Source of the DNA: Phaeosaccion multiseriatum
Lineage: Eukaryota; Protista; Ochrophyta, other classes
Direction of reading: 5' to 3'
NCBI GenBank assembly: GCA_965112735.1
Contig: OZ218965.1
Span: 868,001 to 932,000 of the forward strand
Length of the DNA: 64,000 bases
A model generated the notes under the pieces. The model did no database searches and had not been told where the DNA came from. It saw only the letters and a list, made by a program, of their open reading frames with translations. Positions 6,052 to 32,460 of this stretch are shown here, piece after piece. The stretch's first letter is position 1. Each line of letters starts with the position of its first letter. Both the position numbers and the translations under genes were made by a program.

Positions 6052-6258
6052 GGAGGCCGACTCTGAGAAACGACATTGGGGCAAGACCCGGGGACTCATC
6101 TTAGGAAAGATGGTGGCTTGCTACCAGCAATTTTTATGTTTGAAAGAAGTGGACAGTAGCAGAGGATCAGGGCGGGGAGGAAGCGCACTATAAAAAAAAA
6201 AAATAGCTTCATTTAATTCAATTAATCCCGGATTATCCTGGGTGTCTTATCCTGATGT

Positions 6259-7024
6259 TTACCACCAGCCACCCCACTTCTTGTGGCCCCACTTCTTGTG
6301 GCCGCCCCAGCCGCCCCACTTGCGGCCGCCCCAGCCACCCCACTTCTTGTGGCCCCACTTCTTGTGGCCGCCCCAGCCGCCCCACGAGCCAGAGCCAGAG
6401 CCGGAGCCGGAGCCAGAGCCTGACCAGGACCCAGAGCCGGACCAGCTATACGTGCGGGAAAGGAGGGCGAGGAGGGCAGCATGGCCAAAGCGAAGAGGAA
6501 GACGAACGAGTCCGAGTCGAGGCCCGTCACGGGGCAGTGAAGAGGAAGAAAGAGAGGCGCGATGCGTAGCGCGAGGAGGGCAGTATGGCCAAAGCGAAGA
6601 GGAAGACGAATGAGTCCGAGTCGAGGCCCGTCACCGCAGATGAAGAAAGAGGGCGCGATGCGTAGCGCGAGGAGGGCAACATGGCCAAAGCGAAAAAGGA
6701 AGACGAACGAGTCCGAGTCGAGGCCCGTCACGGGGCAGTGAAGAGGAAGAAAGAGGGCGCGATGGGTAGCCACAGAAAGAGGTAACGAAGAGAGAGGAGA
6801 AGACGCGAAGCGAAGTCAGTGTCGAGCGCAAAGATCAGAAGATAGACAGCCACGCAGAGACAAAGAAGAGGAAGAGAAGAGCGGAGCAAGCTGGGTCAAA
6901 ATGCGTATGTCTTTGCTTCAAGCACTCACAGTTCACGCTGGTCCTCCTCGGCGAGCGGCACGGTGGCGCCAGTGACGAGGGCGAGGGCGGCGATGAAGCC
7001 CAGGAGCACGTGCATGATGTTCAT
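6259..7024 (-). CDS. Secreted RxL-propeptide Gly/Ser/Trp/His/Lys-rich peptide precursor P1 (93 aa)
   Basis: Exon 1 7024-6930: MNIMHVLLGFIAALALVTGATVPLAEEDQRE(L). Intron GTGAGT...TAG 6929-6446. Exon 2 6445-6259: [61 protein letters not shown]. Good start context (ccaccaccATG). Confidence 0.88.
6468..6770. repeat. ~100-bp tandem repeat (3 copies) inside the P1 intron
   Basis: atggccaaagcgaa...gagtccgagtcgaggcccgtcac...gcgcgatgcgtagc recurs three times. The P2 and P3 introns carry a single copy of this segment. Confidence 0.85.
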
Positions 7025-7249
7025 GGTGGTGGTAGGAGAGGTTGGAGAGACAAAGGCGTTGTCTTGGCAGGGTAGGGTTGGTTGTGATGCCCTAGGGAGG
7101 AAGCATGTCATGTCAAAGATACTTTGGTATCCCTCAAATAAAAGGCTCCAAGGGCGCTTTGGCCGGACCACCCGACTGGAGGGGCTCCGGGTTGGGATGC
7201 CAGTCCAGTCCTTACAATCCTTCCCATTCCTCGCTGTACTGCGGCACGG

Positions 7250-8060
7250 GAGGAGATGGCCATGGTCTACAGTGCGGCGATTGCCGTGCTCCTCGCTAAG
7301 CTGCGTCTTCCCAACGCCGTCGGGCACACGGTGAGTGGCCTCCCGGAGATGGACTTTGTGGGGAATGTAGGTGCTGAGAGAGTCTTGCTCTCGTGCCTCG
7401 CAGCACGTACTTGTCCACGGTGTGACGGGTGCTCGCTCTGCTCCACTCGATGGTCACCTCGTCCCCGTCACTTGCTCCTTCGTGGCGAATGTGGCTTCAG
7501 ATTGCGGCGATCTTGCTGTCCTTGTTAGTACCAATACCGGAGGCGCAGATTATGAGTACTGATTTGACACTTACCCCTTTCTCGGGAGCCATCATCTTGC
7601 TTCGTCGCTCGTGCCCAGACCTGCACGGCGTCCGGCCACTGCTGTCTCGACCTTTCACGCGACGCCTGCACAGCGGATGAGGACGAAGAAGGCGTACAAG
7701 GTGGGCGTGGTGCGCATGCCTCCTGCTCACCGATCCGACCCCCCCTTGCGGCCTGCATGAGCTCTTGCTCATACCCTCCGCCCTTGATCTTTGCTTTGTT
7801 GCTCTACGCTACTATGTGCTGCGCGCACGCTCAGGGACTTTGCCGACCGCGCCACCGCGGCACTAGCTACAGAGGAGACTAGTCCCACAGGGGATTTGAC
7901 GGGCGTTCCATTGAGCTCTGGTGGCGCAGTAGAGGGAGCGAGCGCATGAGAACCTGGAGTGTTCGATCCGTGCTTCTCCTGCAGCGCGTTTGGGTGCGTC
8001 TTCCCCACCCTTGTGCCCGCTCACAGTGCCGTGTCTTTGTTCTTCCTCGCTTCCTCTTTG
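7250..8060 (-). pseudogene. Decayed spliced coding-like segment upstream of each peptide gene (paralogues at ~11150-12300, ~13750-14600, ~17260-18450)
   Basis: GTAAGT/GTACGT donors and exon-like blocks (EKHGSNTPGAHALAPS..., DCKIAAIRGHIRNEGASNGDEVTIEWSRAS). An in-frame TGA and indels differ between copies. Confidence 0.35.
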
Positions 8061-8447
8061 AAGCGACTTCTACTTCCACACGTGCGTGAGTCCTCTTGCT
8101 TGATCCTAAGTCTCGATCTCGGCAGCGAATGGGGACAATGACTATCGAGCGGGAGGCGGATCGCCGCGGAGGCCTCTGGCAAAGCTGAGGCCTTCATTTA
8201 TTTCCCAGGGGGCCCACCCAAAAAGACCTACCCAATAACTCAAAAACCTGGATTATTCTGCCAAGAAGGCTGTTTGCTTCGCCTTCACGCCCCCACTGGC
8301 TCATCTACGCCTCTCCATTCGCTCAGCGGCTTGTTGCTACTGGTCCGGGTCAACGCCTCTCGGTCAAGCACCGCCCAGGCTAGTAAGTGCTACGGATGGA
8401 TGGCCTGCTTGCTCATAGACCGCTCGTGTGTGGCTTGTGGAGCAGGC

Positions 8448-8700
8448 TGTTGTAGTTCGGAAAGAGAGAAGGAAGCGCTGGCAAGCGTAGACGAAAGGAA
8501 AGCTGAGAGACGAGAAAAAGCCTTGGTGAAAAACCGAGTAAATTACTAAGATCTCCTGCTAGGAGAGAACTATCGCACGTGAATATGACCACGTGGAGCC
8601 TAGGGGTAGTCAGAGTTAAGTAACTCTACAGTCAAGCGCAAAAAAGGAAGTCAATGAATCTTCTGTAACTGTACAGGAATGTCACACACACACTATGATA
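8448..8700. mobile_element. Probable solo LTR (253 bp) with 5-bp TSD CAGGC
   Basis: Absent from the paralogous site (14951-14970 ggagcaggcctgctg). CAGGC at 8443-8447 and 8701-8705. Starts TGTTGTAG and ends CTATGATA (degenerate CTACAACA). AT-richer than flanks. Confidence 0.7.
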
Positions 8701-9046
8701 CAGGCCTGCTGCCCCCCCCCCCCCCCGAACTCTCCCCTCGTTCAGGACGCTGGTCGCCTCAACCCTCTTTGACGAAGGTCCTTCTCGTCACTGTCTCCTC
8801 CCTTTCCAACCGATGCAACTCTAACCCTGTAGTCCCTTGTGTTCCTGACTTTCGAATGCCTTCCATCCATCTGGCTGTGCTTCACTTGCTCAGCTTGCGT
8901 GTGCCCCAGACGCAGACGCAGGACGCGCGGAGGCCTTCGACACGAGCGAGCAGTAGCCCCGAGGTCAAGGCGTCAGGTGGTTCTCCCTCCGCACCTCGAG
9001 CAAGAAGGGGAAGGCGAGTGTCTGGCCGCAGGCGATCATAGGTAAT

Positions 9047-9619
9047 GGCAGATGTACTGTGGAAAGGTGCGCTAAGTCTGAATTCCGCGAAGGGCTTTGC
9101 CGTCGACTTGGTGGGGCCCGCTTCTGCTCTGTGCAGGGCTGCGGCACGCATGCGAAGAACGGAGGCGTTTGTGTGAAGGTGAAGCGCTGCCGCATAGAGG
9201 GGTGCCAGAAGCAGGTGCAGCGAGGAGGCGGTTGCATTTCTCATGGGGCTCAGGTCAAGCGCTGCCGCGTTGGAGAGTGTGATAAGCTGGCGCGCGGAGG
9301 GACGTGCAACGGCATGTGCGAGAGGCATGCGCGCATCAGCAGCGAGGGAGGAGGCAGAGGAGAGAGACAGCGCGCGCTCAAGAAGGCCTCCCCCGCAATG
9401 GCCGCTAGGAGGGCGAGGCGTGCACGGGAGGGAAGGGCAAGAAGCGAGGAGGGAGGAAGTCTCGCACCGCCTCTAGCCCTGCTGCCGCTGCTCGTGCACA
9501 GGGGTAAGGGTAAGGGGGGGAGCAGCCCAATAGCCGTCGTGCAGCGAAGAAGAGGAAGGCACACCGTGTGGGGGACGAGGTCCAGCTGCCGAAGCGGTTC
9601 CGCAGGTACCGCTGAGTGA
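9047..9619 (+). CDS. WRKY19-like C-x4-C...C-x2-H zinc-finger repeat protein, partly degenerate (start or 5' exon unresolved)
   Basis: Four repeats: CTVERCAKSEFREGLCRRL, CSVQGCGTHAKNGGVCVK, CRIEGCQKQVQRGGGCISHG and CRVGECDKLARGGTCNGMCERH. The first two lack the His ligand. Confidence 0.55.
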   Translation, partial: GRCTVERCAKSEFREGLCRRLGGARFCSVQGCGTHAKNGGVCVKVKRCRIEGCQKQVQRGGGCISHGAQVKRCRVGECDKLARGGTCNGMCERHARISSEGGGRGERQRALKKASPAMAARRARRAREGRARSEEGGSLAPPLALLPLLVHRGKGKGGSSPIAVVQRRRGRHTVWGTRSSCRSGSAGTAE

Positions 9620-10188
9620 CTATTTGTGCGCCGACGGGCTCAGAGAGATGGCGGGACGTGAGATGAACAGAAGGTTGTGATTGGCGTTATAGAGGGCGAT
9701 GTGGAGTGCCTTGAGTCTTGAACTGAAGAGGGAATGGAGAGGAGCAGGGCTGCATGTGGGAGTTAGACGACCTCGTTTGTCTTCTACTCGCCGGGGATGG
9801 GTCCGTGAAGAGGCAGCGATTGAGCAATAATGGCGTGGCTGCTAGGGCACCCTCCTCAGCTGCCGAGGCTTTAGGCCACCGAGATTCCCTTGGCGGCAAG
9901 TCCATGCAGAGCATGCAGGGCGTTGGGGCGCAGAGAGCTAACACATACCGAATACATATTACGACCTGTCGCTACGCCTCCTTCTTCTCTCCAATCAGCA
10001 GGTATACAGTAGCATGAGGACAGTAGCAGAGGATCAGGGCGGGGAGGAAGCGCAGAGATGCGCGCGAAGGGAAAGCAGGGAGCGACGCTGATAAAGCAGC
10101 ATTGCGAGCGTTGAGGGGTGAAAATTGTGTTTAAATTAGATATGCCCGGCTTATCCTGGAGGTCACCCGTTTGTCTCTGTGGTCATAT

Positions 10189-10936
10189 TCACCATCCGTA
10201 TCCGTGCTTGTGGCCGCGGTATCCGCCCCACGAGCCAGACCCAGAGCCGGACCCAGAGCGCCAGGAGCCGGAGCCAGAGCCTGAGCCGGAGCTAGAGCGC
10301 GAGGAGCCGGAGCCGGAGTGTGACCAAAGGGTCCTTGCATGATAGTGGCCGTACTTCTTGTGGCCATACTTCTTGTGGCCGCGGTATCCGCCCCACGAGC
10401 CAGACCCAGAGCCGGACCCAGAGCGCCAGGAGCCGGAGCCAGAGCCTGAGCCGGAGCTAGAGCGCGAGGAGCCGGAGCCGGAGCCAGAGCCGGAGCTAGA
10501 GCTCGAGGAGCCGGAGCCGGAGCCAGAGCCGGAGCTAGAGCTCGAGGAGCCGGAGCCAGAGCCAGAGCCGGAGCTGGAATGCGAGGAGCCAGACCAGCTG
10601 TGCGTGTGGGAAAGGAGCGAGGAGGGCAGAAGCGAAGAGGAAGACGAACGAGTCCGAGTCGAGGCCCGTCACGGGGCAGTGAAGAGGAAGAAAGAGAGGT
10701 GCGATGCGTAGCCACAGGAAGAGGTAACGAAGAGAGAGAAGACGCGAAGCGAAGTCAGTGTCGAGCGCAAGAGACCAGACAAGATAGACTGGCACTGAAA
10801 AGTGGAGCTATATGCGCACGTCCAATCCTTCCAGCACTTACAGTTCACGTTGATCCTCCTTGATGAGCGGCACGGTGGCGCCAGTGACGAGGGCGAGGGC
10901 GGCGATGAAGCCCAAGAGCACGTGCATGATGTTCAT
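10189..10936 (-). CDS. Secreted RxL-propeptide peptide precursor P2 (167 aa; two modules separated by an internal ARTL site)
   Basis: Exon 1 10936-10842 (...TVPLIKEDQREL). Intron GTAAGT...CAG 10841-10598. Exon 2 10597-10189: WSGSSHSSS(GS/S)n...[79 protein letters not shown]. Confidence 0.88.
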
Positions 10937-12953
10937 GGTGGTGGTAGGAGAGCTTGGAGAGACAAAGGCGTCGTCTTGGCAGGGCAGAGTTGGTTGTGAT
11001 GCCCTAGGGAGGGAGTATGTCCTGTCATTCCAAGATACCTCTCAAATAAATAAAAGGCTCCAAGTGCGGCCTGACCACCTGATTGTGAGGGGCTCCGGGT
11101 TGGGATACCAGGCCAGTCCTTATAATCCTTCCACCATTCCTCGCTGTGCTGCGGCATGGGAGGAGATGGCTATGGTCTACACTGTGGCGACTGCCGTGTT
11201 CTGCGCTATGCTGCGTCTTCCCAACGCCGTCGGGCACGCGGTGAGTGGCGCGTGCAGGTGCGCTTGTGTGGCCTTTGAGCCCCGTGTTCTCTGGCTCCGC
11301 AGCAGGTGGTGTCTGGGCCTCCCGGTGATGGACCTTGTGGGGAATGTAAGTGCTGAGAGCGCCGTCGCTCTCGTGACTCGCAGCACGTAACTTGTCCACA
11401 GTGTGACGGGTGCTCGCTCGCTCTGCTCCACTCGATGGTCACCTCGTCCCCGTTACTTGCTCCTTCGTTGCGGATGTGGCCTCTGATTGCGGCGATCTTG
11501 CAGTCCTTGTTCCCAATACCGGAGGCGCAGATTATGAGTACTACTACTATGATTAGGTTCGATTCGACACTTACCCTTCCCCTTCGTTCCCTTCTCGCGA
11601 GCCATAATCTTGCTTCGTCGCTCGTGCCCAGATCTGCGCGGCGTCCGGCCACTGCTGTCTCGATCTTTCACACGATGCCTGCACAGCGGATGAGGACGAA
11701 GAAGGCGTACGAGGTGGGTGTGGTGCGCATGCCTCCTGCTCACCGATCTGACCCCCCCGTGTGGCCTGCCTGAGCTCTTGCTCACACCCTCCGCCCTTGA
11801 TCTTTGCTTTGCTGCTCTACGCTTCTATGTGTGCTATGTGTGTGCTGCGCGCACGCTCAGGGGCTTTGCCGACTGCGTCACCACCACTAGCTACAGAGGA
11901 GACTGGTGCCACGGGAGATTTGACGGGCGTGCCATTGAACTCTGGTGGCGCAGCAGAGGGAGCGAGCGCATGGGCACCTGGAGTGTTCGATCCGTGCTTC
12001 TCCTGAGAGGGAAGGAGGTGCGAAATAAGGTCGTGTAGTAGCGTCTTGAAGTTGGGCGGGATTGGAGGAGAGCAGAGCTGCACGGCTTGAGGGCCTCAAC
12101 GCGATCGAGAAGGATGCGCAGGTAAGGCAGAGGAAGGATAGAAGGAGGAAAGAGAGCCGAAGAAAGGTACTACCCCGCGTGATGTTCTCAGAACATGATA
12201 AATATATCAATACCCATTGAATAGTCGTGGCCCACGATCCTGCTCCCTCTCTGCTAGTCGTGCATGCCGCCTGCCTCACGGAGCCAGACTCGTTGACACA
12301 GTCACCCATCGCTTCACCGCCCCCCCTTGATTTACGCTCCTCGTCAGCCTCGCTCTTCGCAACTCCCGCCGCAAGTTTGGCTGCCTCTCTTCTCCGTCAG
12401 GCCCTTTTGTGCGCTCATAGTGCCCGCACTATGTTGCCAAACCCAACAATATCTCCTCTCTCCTCGGATTATCTCGGGCCCTTATCCTCGCTCGCTCTCC
12501 GAAGCAACCCGGGCACGTCGCTAGTCGAAGCAGTTTGTACGCTATACCAGCGGATCTTCTTTTTTAAAATCCTGAGTCTCGACGCCTGCACAGGATGGTC
12601 TCTCGGATCGCCGCCGAGACCTCTGGCAATCAGCCTCTACCGTAGAGCTGGTTGCCTTACCAATACGCCCACTTAGCCATCTAGCCTCTGATTCACTCAT
12701 TCACTTTAATGATGTGCGCCTTTACGCCCCCACTGTCATCTACACCTCTCTATCGCCGTGAGAAGGCAGAGCGGACGGGGATCAACGCAGACAGGGGCGC
12801 GGGGAAGGAAAGGTTCGGTGTAATCGGCAATACGGCGACAACGGAAGAGCGCCGCTTCAACAACCAACTCGAAGCAATTGCCAGTGTGTTGATTGCGTGA
12901 TTCAATTATGTGTTATCCTGACCCCGGCTTATCCTGGGGTTGTCATTTATCCT

Positions 12954-13528
12954 CTACCATCCATGGCCATGTCCATGACCGTAGCCGTGCCACCCACGGA
13001 GGGTTCTTGCGTGCCATCCACCGTACTTCTTGTGGCCGTACTTCTTGTGGCCGCCCCAGCCGGACCCAGAGCCCCAGCCAGAGCCAGAGCCGGAGCCGGA
13101 GCCAGAGCCTGACCAGGACCCAGAGCCGGACCTCCAGCTGTGCATGTGCGAACGGAGCGCGAGGAGGGCAACATGGCCAAAGTGAAGAAGGAAGACGAAC
13201 GAAGACGAACGAGTCCGAGTCGAGGCCCGTCACGGGGCAGTGGAGAGGAAGAAAGAGAGGTGCGATGGGTAGCCACACGAAGAGGTAACGAAGAGAGGAG
13301 AAGACGCGAAGCGAAGTCAGTATCGAGCGCAAGAGACCAGACAAGATAGACAGCCACGCAGAGACAAAGAAGAGGAAGAGAAGAGCGGAGCAAGCTGGGT
13401 CACAATGCGTATGTCTTTGTTTCAAGCACTCACAGTTCACGCTGGTCCTCCTCGGCGAGCGGCACGGTGGCGCCAGTGACGAGAGCGAGGGCGGCGATGA
13501 AGCCCAGGAGCACGTGCATGATGTTCAT
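12954..13528 (-). CDS. Secreted RxL-propeptide peptide precursor P3 (92 aa; internal ARTLR site)
   Basis: Exon 1 13528-13434, intron 13433-13138. Exon 2 13137-12954: [60 protein letters not shown]. Confidence 0.88.
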
Positions 13529-15299
13529 GGTGGTGGTAGAGAGCTTGGAGAGACAAAGGCGTTGTCTTGGGAGGGTAGGGTTGGTTGTGATGCCCTAGGG
13601 AGGGGGTATGTCATTTCCAAGATATTTTGGTATCTCTCAAATAAAAGACTCCAAGGGCGCTTTGAACCGACCACCCGACTGGAGGGGCTCCGGGTTGGGA
13701 TGCCAGGCCAGTCCTTACAATCCTTCCCATTCCTCGCTGTACTGCGGCATGGGAGGAGATGGCCATGGTCTACAGTGCGGCGATTGCCGTGCTCCTCGCT
13801 AAGCTGCGTCTTCCCAACGCCGTCGGGCACGCGGTGAGTGGCCTCCCGGTGATGGACTTTGTGGGGAATGTAAGTGCTCAGAGAGTCTTGCTCTCGTGCC
13901 TCGCAGCACGTACTTGTCCACGGTGTGACGGGTGCTCGCTCTGCTCCACTCGATGGTTACCTCGTCCCCGTCACTTGCTCCTTCGTGGCGAATGTGGCTT
14001 CAGATTGCGGCGATCTTGCAGTCCTTGTTACCAATACCGGAGGCGCAGATTATGAGTACTACTACTGTGATTAGGTTCGACTCGACACTTACCCCTTTCT
14101 CACGAGCCATCATCTTGCTTCGTCGCTCGTGCCCAGACCTGCGCGGCGTCCGGCCACTGCTGTCTCGACCTTTCACGCGACGCCTGCACAGCGGATGAGG
14201 ACGAAGAAGGCGTACAAGGTGGGCGTGGTGCGTATGCCTTCTGCTCACCGATCCGACCCCCCCTTGCGGCCTGCATGAGCTCTCGCTCATACCCTCCGCC
14301 CTTGATCTTTGCTTTATTGCTCTACGCTACTATGTGCTGCGTGCACGCTCAGGGACTTTGCCGACCGCGCCACCGCGGCACTAGCTACAGAGGAGACTGC
14401 TCCCACAGGGGATTTGACGGGCGTTCTATTGAGCTCTGGTGGCGCAGTAGAGGGAGCGAGCGCATGGGCACCTGGAGTGTTCGATCCGTGCTTCTCCTGC
14501 AGCGCGTTTGGCTGCGTCTTCCCCACCCTTGTGCCCGCTCACAGTGCCCGTCTTTGTTCTTCCTCGCTTCCTCTTTGAAGCGACTTCTACTTCCACACGT
14601 GCGTGAGTCCTCTTGCTTGATCCCAAGTCTCGATCTCGGCAGCGAATGGGGACAATGTCTCTCGAGCGGGAGGCGGATCGCCGCGGAGGCCTCTGGCAAA
14701 ACTGAGGCCTTCATTTATTTCCCAGGAGGCCCACCCAAAAAGACCTACCCATAACTCAAAAACCTGGATTATTCTGCCAAGAAGCTGTTTGCTTCGCCTT
14801 CACGCCCCCACTGGCTCATCTACGCCTCTCCATTCGCTCAGCGGCTTGTTGCTGCTGGGCCGGGTCAACGCCTCTCGGTCAAGCACCGCCCAGGTTAGTA
14901 AGTGCTACGGATGGATGGCCTGCTTGCTGATAGACCGCTCGTGTGTGGCTTGTGGAGCAGGCCTGCTGCCCCCCCCCCCCAACTCTCCCCTCGTTCAGGA
15001 CGCTGGTCGCCTCAACCCTCTTTGACGAAGGTCCTTCTCCTCACTGTCTCCTCCCTTTCCAACCGATGCAACTCTAACCCTGTAGTCCCTTGTGTTCCTG
15101 ACTTTCGAATGCCTTCCATCCATCTGGCTGTGCTTCACTTGCTCAGCTTGCGTGTGCCCCAGACGCAGACGCAGGACGCGCGGAGGCCTTCGACACGAGC
15201 GAGCAGTAGCCCCGAGGTCAAGGCGTCAGGTGGTTCTCCCTCCGCACCTCGAGCAAGAAGGGGAAGGCGAGTGTCTGGCCGCAGGCGATCATAGGTAAT

Positions 15300-15870
15300 G
15301 GCAGATGTACTGTGGAAAGGTGCGCTAAGTCTGAATTCCGCGAAGGGCTTTGCCGTCGACTTGGTGGGGCCCGCTTCTGCTCTGTGCAGGGCTGCGGCAC
15401 GCATGCGAAGAACGGAGGCGTTCGTGTGAAGGTGAAGCGCTGCCGCATAGAGGGGTGCCAGAAGCAGGCAGCGAGGAGGCGGTTGCATTTCTCATGGGGC
15501 TCAGGTCAAGCGCTGCCGCGTTGGAGAGTGTGATAAGCTGGCGCGCGGAGGGACGTGCAACGGCATGTGCGAGAGGCATGCGCGCATCAGCAGCGAGGGA
15601 GGAGGCAGAGGAGAGAGACAGCGCGCGCTGAAGACAGCCTCCCCCGCAATGGCCGCGAGGAGGGCGAGGCGTGCACGGGAGGGAAGGGCAAGAAGCGAGG
15701 AGGGAGGAAGTCTCGCACCGCCTCTAGCCCTGCTGCCGCTGCTCGTGCACAGGGGTAAGGGTAAGGGGGGGAGCAGCCCAATAGCCGTCGTGCAGCGAAG
15801 AAGAGGAAGGCACGCCGCGTGGGGGACGAGGTCCGGCTGCCGAAGCGGTTCCGCAGGTACCGCTGAGTGA
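15300..15870 (+). pseudogene. Frameshifted copy of the WRKY19-like zinc-finger gene
   Basis: Near-identical to 9047-9619, but with a 2-bp deletion (gaagcaggtgcagcg to gaagcaggcagcg near 15468) and a Cys-to-Arg change (GGVCVK to GGVRVK). Confidence 0.7.
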
Positions 15871-16439
15871 CTATTTGTGCGCCGACGGGCTCAGAGAGAT
15901 GGCGGGACGTGAGATGAACAGAAGGTTGTGATTGGCGTTATAGAGGGCGATGTGGAGTGCCTTGAGTCTTGAACTGAAGAGGGAATGGAGAGGAGCAGGG
16001 CTGCATGTGGGAGTTAGACGACCTCGTTTGTCTTCTACTCGCCGGGGATGGGTCCGTGAAGAGGCAGCGATTGAGCAATAATGGCGTGGCTGCTAGGGCA
16101 CCCTCCTCAGCTGCCGAGGCTTTAGGCCACCGAGATTCCCTTGGCGGCAAGTCCATGCAGAGCATGCAGGGCGTTGGGGCGCAGAGAGCTAACACATACC
16201 GAATACATATTACGACCTGTCGCTACGCCTCCTTCTTCTCTCCAATCAGCAGGTATACAGTAGCATGAGGACAGTAGCAGAGGATCAGGGCGGGGAGGAA
16301 GCGCAGAGATGCGCGCGAAGGGAAAGCAGGGAGCGACGCTGATAAAGCAGCATTGCGAGCGTTGAGGGGTGAAAATTGTGTTTAAATTAGATATGCCCGG
16401 CTTATCCTGGAGGTCACCCGTTTGTCTCTGTGGTCATAT

Positions 16440-17045
16440 TCACCATCCGTATCCGTGCTTGTGGCCGCGGTATCCGCCCCACGAGCCAGACCCAGAGCCG
16501 GACCCAGAGCGCCAGGAGCCTGAGCGAGAGCCTGAGCCGGAGCCAGAGCTGGAGCCGGACCAGCTGTGCGTGTGGGAAAGGAGCGCGAGGAGGGAAAAAC
16601 GGCCAAAGCGAGGCGTACCCAGAGGCGACGAGGAAGACGAACGAGTCCGAGTCGAGGCCCGTCACGGCAGAGGAAGAAGAGAGGCGCGAAGCGTAGCCAC
16701 AGGAGGAGGTGACGAAGAGAGAGGAAGACGCGAAGCGAAGTCCGTGTCGAGCGCAGGTCACGGAAGAGGAAGAAGAGAGGCGCGAAGCGTAGCCACAGGA
16801 GGAGGTGACGAAGGGAGAGGAGAAGACGCGAAGCGAAGTCAGTGTCGAGCGCAAGAGACCAGACAAGCTAGACACAGGCACGCAGAGACAAAGAAAAGGA
16901 AGAAAAGAGCGGGGGCACAAATGTGCATGTCCAATCCTTCCAGCACTTACAGTTCACGCTGGTCCTCCTCGGCGAGCGGCACGGTGGCGCCAGTGACGAG
17001 GGCGAGGGCGGCGATGAAGCCCAGGAGCACGTGCATGATGTTCAT
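16440..17045 (-). CDS. Secreted RxL-propeptide peptide precursor P4 (72 aa)
   Basis: Exon 1 17045-16951, intron GTAAGT...CAG 16950-16564. Exon 2 16563-16440: [40 protein letters not shown]. Confidence 0.88.
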
Positions 17046-17538
17046 GATGGTGGTAGGAGAGGTTGGAGAGACAAAGGCGTTGTCTTGGCAGGGTAGGGTT
17101 GGTTGTGATGCCCTAGGAAGGGGGCATGTCCTGTCATTTCCAAGGTAAATATAAGGCTCCAAGGGCGCTTTGGCCCGACCACCCGATTGGAGGGGCTCCG
17201 GGTTGGGATGCCAGGCCAGTCCTTACAATCCTTCCCATTCCTTGTACTGCGGCATGGGAGGAGATGGCCATGGTCTACAGTGCGGCGATTGCCGTGCTCC
17301 TCGCTATGCTGCGTCTTCCCAACGCCGTCGGGCACGCGGTGAGTGGCCTCCCGGTGATGGACTTTGTGGGGAATGTAAGTGCTGAGAGCGTCATTGCTCT
17401 TGTACTCGCAGCACGTACTTGTCCACGGTGTGACGGGTGCTCGCTCTGCTCCACTCGATGGTCACCTCTTCCCCGTCACTTTCTCCTTCGTGGCGAATGT
17501 GCCTTCAGATTGCGGCGATCTTGCAGTCCTTGTTACCA

Positions 17539-17793
17539 TCGGCCCTGGAAGAGGTTATCAGATTACTGATTACGGCCGGCGCAGCCGGCCTGATTACTGA
17601 TTATGGCGCCAGCCGGGCCTGATTACTGATTATGGCCGGCGCCAGCCGGGTCTGATTACTGATTATGACCGGCGCCAGCCGGCCTGATTACTGATTATGA
17701 CGGGCGCTAGCCGGCCTGATTACTGATTATTGGCGCCAGCCGGCCTGATTACTGATTATGACCGGCGCACACTGTAACCTCTTCCAGGGCCGA
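17539..17793. mobile_element. MITE (255 bp) with 19-bp TIR, 6-bp TSD TTACCA and internal ~30-bp tandem repeats
   Basis: TIR tcggccctggaagaggtta (17539-17557) and taacctcttccagggccga (17775-17793). TTACCA at 17533-17538 and 17794-17799. Empty paralogous site gtccttgttaccaataccgg at ~14021-14040. Interior is (gattactgattatggcgccagccggcct)-like repeats. Confidence 0.9.
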
Positions 17794-19475
17794 TTACCAA
17801 TACCGGAGGCGCAGATTATGAGTACTGATTTGACACTTACCCCTTTCTCGGGAGCCATAATCTTGCTTCGTCGCTCGTGCCCAGACCTGCGCGGCGTCCG
17901 ACCACTGCTGTCTCGACCTTTCACGCGACGCCTGCACAGCGGATGAGGACGAACAAGGCGTACAAGGTGGGCGTGGTGCGCATGCCTCCTGCTCACGGAT
18001 CCGACCCCCCCTTGCGGCCTGCATGAGCTCTCGCTCATACCCTCTGCCCTTGATTTTTGCTTTGTTGCTCAACGCTACCATGTGCTGCGCGCACGCTCAA
18101 GGGCTTTGCCGACCGCGCCACCGGCACTAGCTACCGAGGAGACTGTTCCCACGGGGGATTTGACGGGCGTGGCATTGAACTCTGGTGGCGCAGAAGAGGG
18201 AGCGAGCGCATGGGCACCTGGAGTGTTCGATCCGTGCTTCTCCTGAGAGGGAAGGAGGAGCGAGATAAGGTCACGTAGCAGCATCTTGAAGCTGGGAGGA
18301 ATTGGAGGAGAGCAGGGCTGCACGTCTTCAGGGCCTCGACGCGATCGAGTGGGATACGCAGGTAAGGTAGAGGAAGGAGAAGGAGGAAAGAGAGCCGAAG
18401 AAAGGTACTACCCCGCGTGATGTTCTCAGAACATGATAAATATATCAATACCAATGGAATAGTGGTGTCCCAAGATCCTGTTCCATCTCTGCTAGTCGTA
18501 TATATATGCCGCCTGCCTCACGGAGTCAGACTCGTTGGTACCGTCACCCATCGCTTCGCCGCCCCCCCTGGATCCGCGCTCCTCGTCAGCCTCGCTCATC
18601 GCGACTCCTGTAAGCGAGCTAGGCTGTTTCTCTTCTCCGCCAGGCCCTTTTGCGCGCCCATAGTGCACGCACTTTGTTGCCAAACCCAACAATATCTCCT
18701 CTCTCCTCTCCATTGTTTCGGGCTTTTCTCCTCGCTCGCTCTCCGAAGCAACCCGGGCACGTCGCTAGCCGAAGCGGTTTCTACGCTACATGAGCGGGTT
18801 CTCTTCTCCAAATCCTGAGTCTCGACGCCTGCACAATGAACGGAGACAAGTGTCTCGGATCGCCGCCGATGCCTCTGGCAAATCTGAGGCCTTCATTTGT
18901 TCCCCAGGGGCCCCACCCCCAAAAAGCGCTGACCCCCTGAGTCTACACCTACTTAACTTCTGCGCTGCGCTGCAGAGTAAGTAGCTCATGTGCTGGGACA
19001 CTTGGACTCTACAGTAGTGTTGCTTGCGTCACCGTCACGCCTACTTAGTCATCTACGCCTCTTCATTCGCTGTATGAGCTTGTTGCTGCTGGGCCAGGTC
19101 AACGCCTCTCTTGGGAGATGGCTCCAAAGGCCTCAAATGTGCTCCTGAAGCTGAGCCCTGGAGAAGGATGCGATCCTTCTCTCGTTTTTGTGTCGCACTC
19201 ATCCGTCAAGGATATGATTCTCCGGCCGATCCTGGCCGATCCCTCGAACACGTAAGATCCAAGAGGAAATCGCTGCCCTTCAGCTCTCTCATGTCTTGCT
19301 CACTCAGACTTCCCACCTGTGCGGCCTTCCCGTTCACCTCAGGGCGAAGCTCGTGCAGGTGCGCCTGCGCTTCATTGGGTGCTGGATAGACACCCTGCAT
19401 AGCTTTTGTATCCTCCTGATCAGCTTGAGGAAGACGGTGGAGCAGAAGGGGGGAAGGGGCTCGCGTGGGAGGGGC

Positions 19476-21466: not shown

Positions 21467-32460
<10,994 letters not shown>

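Follow-up and report, generated by a model that had tools for sequence, protein, structure and literature searches.

Four predicted minus-strand genes concealed in the open reading frame track

What is encoded by four 32-amino-acid (aa) stubs on the minus strand of a 64,000-nucleotide (nt) stretch of Phaeosaccion multiseriatum DNA (GenBank assembly GCA_965112735.1, contig OZ218965.1, positions 868,001 to 932,000), and what might the products do? We call this whole 64-kb stretch the window and number positions from its first letter. The original prediction, made from the letters of the DNA, had proposed four two-exon genes, here P1 to P4, joined at 6930/6445, 10842/10597, 13434/13137 and 16951/16563 and hidden from the open reading frame (ORF) track by a phase-2 intron in the Leu codon of ...EDQREL. 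We read the locus on the minus strand and spliced it by script at these junctions. The models were reproduced exactly, and the translation gave the expected P1 mature part of 61 aa with 13 Trp and zero acidic residues. The genes and their predicted mature parts are as follows.

6259-7024, minus strand: gene P1, 93 aa; exon 1 7024-6930, intron 6929-6446 (484 nt), exon 2 6445-6259 including the TAA stop
6262-6444, minus strand: P1 mature part, 61 aa
10189-10936, minus strand: gene P2, 167 aa; exon 1 10936-10842, intron 10841-10598 (244 nt), exon 2 10597-10189
10192-10596, minus strand: P2 mature part, made of two units and divided by an internal A-R-T-L at 10338-10327, after which the second unit opens WSHSGSGS
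12954-13528, minus strand: gene P3, 92 aa; exon 1 13528-13434, intron 13433-13138 (296 nt), exon 2 13137-12954
12957-13136, minus strand: P3 mature part, with an internal A-R-T-L at 13010-12999, then a 14-aa Gly/His/Tyr/Trp tail
16440-17045, minus strand: gene P4, 72 aa; exon 1 17045-16951, intron 16950-16564 (387 nt), exon 2 16563-16440
16443-16562, minus strand: P4 mature part, nearly the same as the second unit of P2

The genes share a first exon of 95 nt that is near-identical in all copies. Its 44-nt start has exactly four matches in the window, all on the minus strand with 0-1 mismatches, whereas 0 are expected by chance. The ATGs stand at 7024, 10936, 13528 and 17045 in the context caccaccATGa. 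All four introns are of the GT-AG type in phase 2, with the donors ct/GTGAGT (P1 and P3) and ct/GTAAGT (P2 and P4) and with acceptors in which CAG or TAG closes a long pyrimidine tract. Without splicing, each ORF ends directly after ...QREL, where the donor itself makes the TGA or TAA stop; because this stop closes every unspliced ORF, the track gives just 32-aa stubs, which agrees with the proposed reason for the concealment. At the other end, the stop codon sits directly behind the final Trp in all four genes, despite second exons of 40-135 codons. These gene ends, TGG followed by TAA, TAG or TGA (6259-6261, 10189-10191, 12954-12956 and 16440-16442), read GGTRR, like a weak 5' splice site, as at the end of exon 1. 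A further downstream exon seems unlikely, because the sequence downstream is not shared among the copies. The sole similarity there between the 3' regions of the P1/P3 and P2/P4 gene types is a short motif in the 3' untranslated region (UTR).

6227-6241, 10145-10159, 12923-12937 and 16396-16410, minus strand: 15-nt near-palindromic 3'-UTR motif CCAGGATAAKCCGGG, four matches against 0.02 expected

It lies 17-29 nt past each stop codon, is absent elsewhere in the window, and may be a 3'-end or regulatory signal, or an edge marker of the duplicated unit.

The reading frame of exon 2 was then considered on both strands. On the minus strand, two frames, the proposed one and one other, are open in all four second exons, and the frame is thus fixed by splice phase alone. 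Codon usage did not separate frames or strands at exon 2. On the plus strand, each frame is interrupted by stops in two or more of the four second exons, and the ORFs have no conserved start; a Pro/Glu-rich plus-strand product was rejected on these two grounds. The proposed minus-strand frame is kept in all four second exons through their differing lengths and many codon-sized insertions or deletions, and it is supported, at the level of sequence, by the shared splice phase and by all four frames closing after the final Trp. The HKKW/HKKY repeats that it encodes have eight matches in the window, confined to P1 to P4, with 0.09 expected by chance. As judged from the DNA, P1 to P4 form an orphan gene family that is well-formed and had not been annotated before; its predicted product is unusual.

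Predicted precursor architecture

The layout proposed for the precursors (signal peptide, acidic propeptide, R-x-L, a mature part that starts with Trp and has two blocks) holds on the spliced sequences. Exon 1 encodes MNIMH, a 12-residue hydrophobic core (residues 6-17, Kyte-Doolittle 2.9), T-G-A-T-V-P-L, the acidic segment A/I-E/K-E-D-Q-R-E and two bases of the following Leu. With the small-residue T-G-A site behind the core, and with signal peptide and cleavage judged by eye, the exon appears to encode a signal-peptide-like start and a 12-aa acidic propeptide ending in R-E-L.

The mature parts (40-135 aa) contain zero Asp or Glu. Apart from a single A-R-T-L in P2 and another in P3, they consist of Gly, Ser, Trp, Tyr, His, Lys and Arg. 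Each runs from an N-terminal Trp through a Trp-punctuated (Gly-Ser)n block to a cationic aromatic block of Gly, His, Lys and Trp or Tyr that ends in Trp. The P1 mature part has the composition G24 W13 S10 K9 H4 R1, that is, 21% Trp. The isoelectric point (pI) is about 11 for the mature parts and 8.8-11.5 for the single units; aromatic residues make up 8-21% and His 5-12% of the mature parts. S-x-S spacing runs throughout the Ser block, with 9-46 instances in each mature part. All members have stretches of 6-20 Ser-Gly dipeptides without a break, and the Gly-Ser/poly-Ser block reaches about 60 residues in P2. AlphaFold returned no fold, with a predicted local distance difference test score (pLDDT) of 57 and zero secondary structure.

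The R-x-L motifs mark the boundaries of the units. R-E-L occurs four times, at the propeptide ends, and R-T-L twice, inside P2 and P3, and every Leu past the propeptide lies within an R-x-L. The residue after R-E-L is Trp in all four genes; after the internal R-T-L of P2 it is again Trp, which opens a second WSxSGSGS unit. Directly behind R-E-L or R-T-L, three of the six units start with WSGS or WSHS and one with WRSG. Such a pattern would be expected of a polyprotein that is cleaved by an Arg(P3)-Leu(P1) rule.

Recent duplication and divergence of the copies

All four copies stem from the recent duplication of one unit and hence are not four independent observations. They arose as a tandem array, whose extent and identities are listed below.

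6100-18400: two-gene block of about 6.25 kb, duplicated in tandem as P1-spacer-P2 and then P3-spacer-P4
7025-7900, minus strand: shared 5'-UTR and upstream sequence of P1, about 0.9 kb; the other copies start at 10937, 13529 and 17046, with 92-96% identity in all four
Upstream sequence: identity between copies 0.92-0.96
Exon 1: identity between copies 0.93-1.00
Intron: identity between copies 0.90-0.96
Exon 2: identity between copies 0.83-0.95, with many codon-sized gaps
6467-6770, minus strand: pyrimidine-rich minisatellite in the P1 intron, 104 nt x 3.0
16630-16853, minus strand: pyrimidine-rich minisatellite in the P4 intron, 96 nt x 2.4

Within the shared upstream sequence, a TATTTGAG box stands about 105 nt before the ATG. 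The minisatellites account for the differences in intron length among the four genes; read on the plus strand they give Glu/Arg/Lys-rich, misleading long ORFs, e.g., 16369-17148. The intron as a structured or known RNA was rejected (z = +1.0, zero Rfam matches).

Exon 2 is the fastest-changing segment: between P1 and P3 it differs by 0.14 per site as against about 0.04 in the flanks, with eight amino-acid-changing and six synonymous codon differences. To judge from the alignments, this divergence is caused by repeat slippage (6-, 15-, 18- and 39-nt periods), block exchange and Trp/Tyr swaps. Exon 1 shows four synonymous differences and two changed residues, too few for a test. Because the copies are young, their similarity is no evidence of function. 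The near-identity of P4 with the second unit of P2 suggests that the R-x-L-bounded unit is the evolving module.

Search for relatives and transcripts

We searched for relatives at the level of protein, structure and DNA. Exon 2 of P2 had zero matches among 5.8 billion protein clusters, and neither did the signal exon, searched through its contiguous upstream ORF with region restriction so that full-length proteins were eligible, match any of the 5.8 billion clusters. Against 1.84 billion representatives, exon 2 of P3 gave only a (GS)n low-complexity match. Pfam and the PDB gave zero matches, no score in the ESM Atlas exceeded 0.70, and a degenerate DNA pattern of the signal exon had zero matches in metagenome DNA. 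By these sequence searches the family is a lineage-specific orphan without described relative, in line with the earlier claim that the peptide system is undescribed. The standard ORF track, and apparently also the public protein collections, miss the whole gene class, because the phase-2 intron parts the 95-nt signal exon from the low-complexity exon.

A search of metagenomes with the HKKY repeat returned one match (L001; contig OCZT010023937.1, 2424-2798, minus strand), a low-GC sequence for a 124-aa, secreted-looking protein. In this protein, which is unrelated and bacterial-type, Met-rich repeats of the (MDMKNM) type precede four HGHKKY repeats. Its likeness to the algal HKKY motif is one of convergence, and it is a candidate metal binder; its neighbourhood was uninformative, with zero metal genes.

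Sequencing runs that contain the locus come from one sample, with the library type not stated, and were mapped to 6150-11100. The reads cover introns and intergenic DNA evenly and cross the exon 1/intron border unspliced.

Possible functions of the encoded peptides

Our preferred explanation is that P1 to P4 are genes for disordered block peptides that are secreted, undergo RXL-type processing and form an extracellular matrix, an adhesive or a template for mineral. Because every step past translation is inferred, our confidence in this material-forming reading is modest, and we put its probability at roughly 40%. The signal peptide would be cut near T-G-A/T-V, and an R-x-L-specific protease of the secretory pathway, of the diatom RXL or apicomplexan PEXEL type, would cut after Leu and remove the propeptide; the same protease would split P2 and P3 at A-R-T-L into two units each. 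In the Golgi the Ser block may be modified, its S-x-S spacing being suited to processive phosphorylation and its Ser-Gly repeats to glycan attachment, which would turn each peptide into a polyampholyte with an anionic block and a cationic aromatic block. Charge, cation-pi and aromatic interactions might then make such peptides condense into an extracellular material, be it the matrix of a wall or of scales, an adhesive or a template for mineral; the Trp-type (P1) and Tyr/His-type (P2 to P4) variants would tune the material properties.

What argues for functional genes of this kind is that the ATG context, the hydrophobic core, the same-phase GT-AG introns, the stop after the last Trp and the 3'-UTR motif are complete in four of four copies. 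The mechanism also has published precedents in the RXL domains of diatom silica proteins (PMC5525289, PMC4557024), in squid beak (PMC6884462) and in tubeworm cement (PMC4275877), and condensation is how known systems of similarly few residue types act. Several results weigh on the other side. The spliced products of P1 to P4 were not found in the protein collections searched, and neither the 6930/6445 nor the 10842/10597 joint occurs in the sequencing runs, which behave as genomic DNA and are therefore mute on splicing. Exon-specific purifying selection was not shown, exon 1 being not clearly better kept than the upstream sequence or the introns. Exon 2 is of low complexity and has a second open frame on its strand, so that its openness alone is weak evidence.

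The main rival is that the genes encode host-defence (antimicrobial or anti-grazer) peptides, in which an acidic propiece keeps a cationic Trp/His/Gly-rich peptide harmless until cleavage and duplication diversifies the arsenal. It appears to fit a conserved prepro region joined to a fast-changing cationic exon about as well as the biomaterial reading does, this combination within a tandem cluster being a hallmark of defence peptides such as those of the nlp-29 cluster (PMC2453101). The mature parts are acid-free, very basic and aromatic, and in size, charge and acidic propiece they resemble the cationic antimicrobial class, whose members are microbicidal; Trp-rich cationic peptides such as indolicidin are membrane-active. 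Exon 2 has moreover diverged more than any other segment of the unit, which is otherwise 92-96% identical, as in the nlp/cnc clusters (PMC2453101), although repeat slippage and block exchange largely produce this divergence and selection is not needed. Long (Gly-Ser)n and poly-Ser blocks are atypical of antimicrobial peptides and dilute the charge, and on balance we regard a defence role as possible but doubtful; if it were correct, few such families would have been reported from a stramenopile alga before this one. It is unlikely, on our reckoning, that P1 to P4 have no function at all and are a young tandem repeat in which a chance signal-like ORF and low-complexity sequence are untranscribed, or decaying pseudogenes. 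The descent from one recent ancestor unit with equal identity in non-coding and coding sequence would suit such a repeat, as would the two open minus-strand frames in every exon 2, the lack of RNA joints in runs that behave as genomic DNA and of a matching protein in the databases searched, and a neighbouring duplicated WRKY19-type ORF that is already broken in one copy. Decay is harder to reconcile with a start, signal-type segment, splice sites, phase, stop and 3'-UTR motif that stay intact in all four genes despite heavy rearrangement of exon 2, or with the preponderance of synonymous differences in exon 1 (four, against two changed residues).

The two minor alternatives each start from one part of the mature sequence. 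If the Ser-Gly repeats carried sulfated glycans, P1 to P4 would be proteoglycan-type core peptides whose cationic aromatic tail docks the glycan carrier to the wall. The uninterrupted runs of 6-20 Ser-Gly dipeptides in every member recall serglycin, where such repeats are attachment sites for sulfated glycans, and stramenopile algae do secrete sulfated polysaccharides; the acidic residues usual beside glycosaminoglycan attachment sites are missing from the mature parts, and we consider this explanation very unlikely. Rated slightly lower still is a role as secreted metal-binding peptides, with His/Lys/aromatic repeats that would capture extracellular Cu, Zn, Ni or Fe for uptake, detoxification or a metal-hardened material. 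It draws on stretches rich in His, among them HKK[W/Y]GHKK[W/Y] and the GHGHGHG tail of P3, and on the bacterial-type metagenome protein, which joins a Met-rich repeat to four HGHKKY and so has the kind of composition that periplasmic metal binders typically show. The His content of the mature parts is only 5-12%, however, the main residues of P1 are Trp, Gly and Lys, none of which binds metals, and the context of the metagenome protein holds no metal genes.

If the peptides are expressed and processed as the material-forming reading predicts, they would extend RXL-type maturation of low-complexity secreted peptides beyond the diatoms and give a handle on the RXL protease. They would also be natural block peptides of very small size (40-60 aa, up to 21% Trp), suited as models of Ser-block modification and cation-pi chemistry in extracellular materials. 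A more far-reaching form of this reading, in which a non-diatom photosynthetic stramenopile makes RXL-processed peptides that hold a modifiable Ser block and a cationic Trp/Tyr block in a single chain, coacervate by themselves and template a mineralized or organic cell covering, is quite unlikely by our assessment. Were it true, the silaffin/cingulin principle and the RXL protease would be older and wider than the diatoms, and P1, with its 21% Trp, would represent a new class of Trp-driven extracellular condensate.

Neighbouring sequence

The spacers and the remainder of the window hold the following features.

9059-9619, plus strand: WRKY19-type zinc-finger ORF in the spacer (Pfam PF24906, E = 2e-8), intact, 186 aa
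15312-15870, plus strand: the duplicate of this ORF, split into two ORFs
21467-30588, minus strand: multi-exon gene of glycoside hydrolase family 2/beta-galactosidase, with Bgal_small_N (E = 4e-30), LacZ_4 and Glyco_hydro_2 fragments
44-52 kb of the window: EF-hand-containing ORFs

The nearest Atlas clusters of the WRKY19-type ORF come from oomycetes and diatoms, a weak pointer to a stramenopile host.

Comparison with known systems

P1 to P4 can be set beside three kinds of described secreted peptides and proteins. In Caenorhabditis elegans, clustered genes for Gly/Tyr-rich nlp and cnc peptides diversify under selection (PMC2453101). The nlp-29 and cnc clusters share with P1 to P4 small Gly/aromatic-rich peptides that are secreted (predicted here), arrangement in tandem clusters of a few kilobases, and quick diversification after local duplication (PMC2453101). 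They differ in their processing signals and have zero homology with P1 to P4, and Ser blocks are found only in the latter.

Structural materials of animals offer a second comparison. In squid-beak proteins, the Gly/His/Tyr repeats undergo coacervation that depends on His/Tyr and on the stacking of aromatic residues (PMC6884462), and tubeworm cement combines the polyphosphoserine protein Pc-3 with basic, repetitive proteins, the Tyr of Pc-1 and Pc-2 being converted to 3,4-dihydroxyphenylalanine (DOPA) (PMC4275877). The tubeworm cement proteins Pc-1 to Pc-5 and the squid-beak His-rich proteins resemble P1 to P4 in their limited alphabet (Gly, Lys, His, Tyr, Ser), in poly-Ser with a basic aromatic component and in disorder; the mechanism known for these animal materials is coacervation, with His/Tyr and charge as its drivers (PMC4275877, PMC6884462). 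The lineages are unrelated and the likeness is an analogy only: in P1 to P4 both blocks are in one peptide, and in P1 Trp replaces the DOPA-forming Tyr. Proteins of the squid-beak HBP type are recognized by at least four GHGxY motifs, or by two with a spacer (PMC6884462), whereas P1 to P4 contain 0 GHGxY and only the related stretches GYGHGHGHG and GHKHGYG.

The third comparison is with the silica-associated proteins of diatoms. These carry a short RXL domain behind the signal peptide, which is removed by an unidentified protease, and RXL also stands at the ends of the repeat units in silaffin, cingulin and silacidin precursors (PMC5525289, PMC4557024). In silaffins, phosphoserine occurs together with modified lysines (PMC4557024), and cingulins contain RXL and come in Trp-rich or Tyr-rich variants that alternate with Ser/Lys-rich stretches (PMC4557024, PMC9650480). 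Like silaffins of the Sil1p/natSil-1A type and silacidins, P1 to P4 would be signal-peptide precursors with a short pro-region ending in R-x-L and with R-x-L at unit ends releasing short Ser/Gly/Lys/Tyr-rich peptides, and their Ser is predicted to be phosphorylated, as is expected of the two diatom families. They have zero sequence similarity to silaffins and silacidins, Trp is dominant in them, and we found no link between the locus and silica. Where silaffins have KxxK lysine clusters, all four mature parts have 0 KxxK and present their lysines as HKK[W/Y]; the original prediction had noted this absence and had claimed no homology. With cingulins the likeness lies in (predicted) secretion, in RXL and in the occurrence of Trp-rich as well as Tyr-rich forms that alternate with stretches of Ser and Lys. 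The cingulins themselves are long and repetitive, with KXXK in their basic regions, whereas the precursors here have 72-167 aa (mature parts 40-135 aa) without KXXK, and no homology was detected. The comparison with silaffins and cingulins that had been drawn for this locus is fair as an analogy, since RXL and W/Y-rich regions are documented in these proteins (PMC5525289, PMC4557024). By the evidence of sequence, P1 to P4 are not silaffins or cingulins; the resemblance is one of architecture, not of membership.

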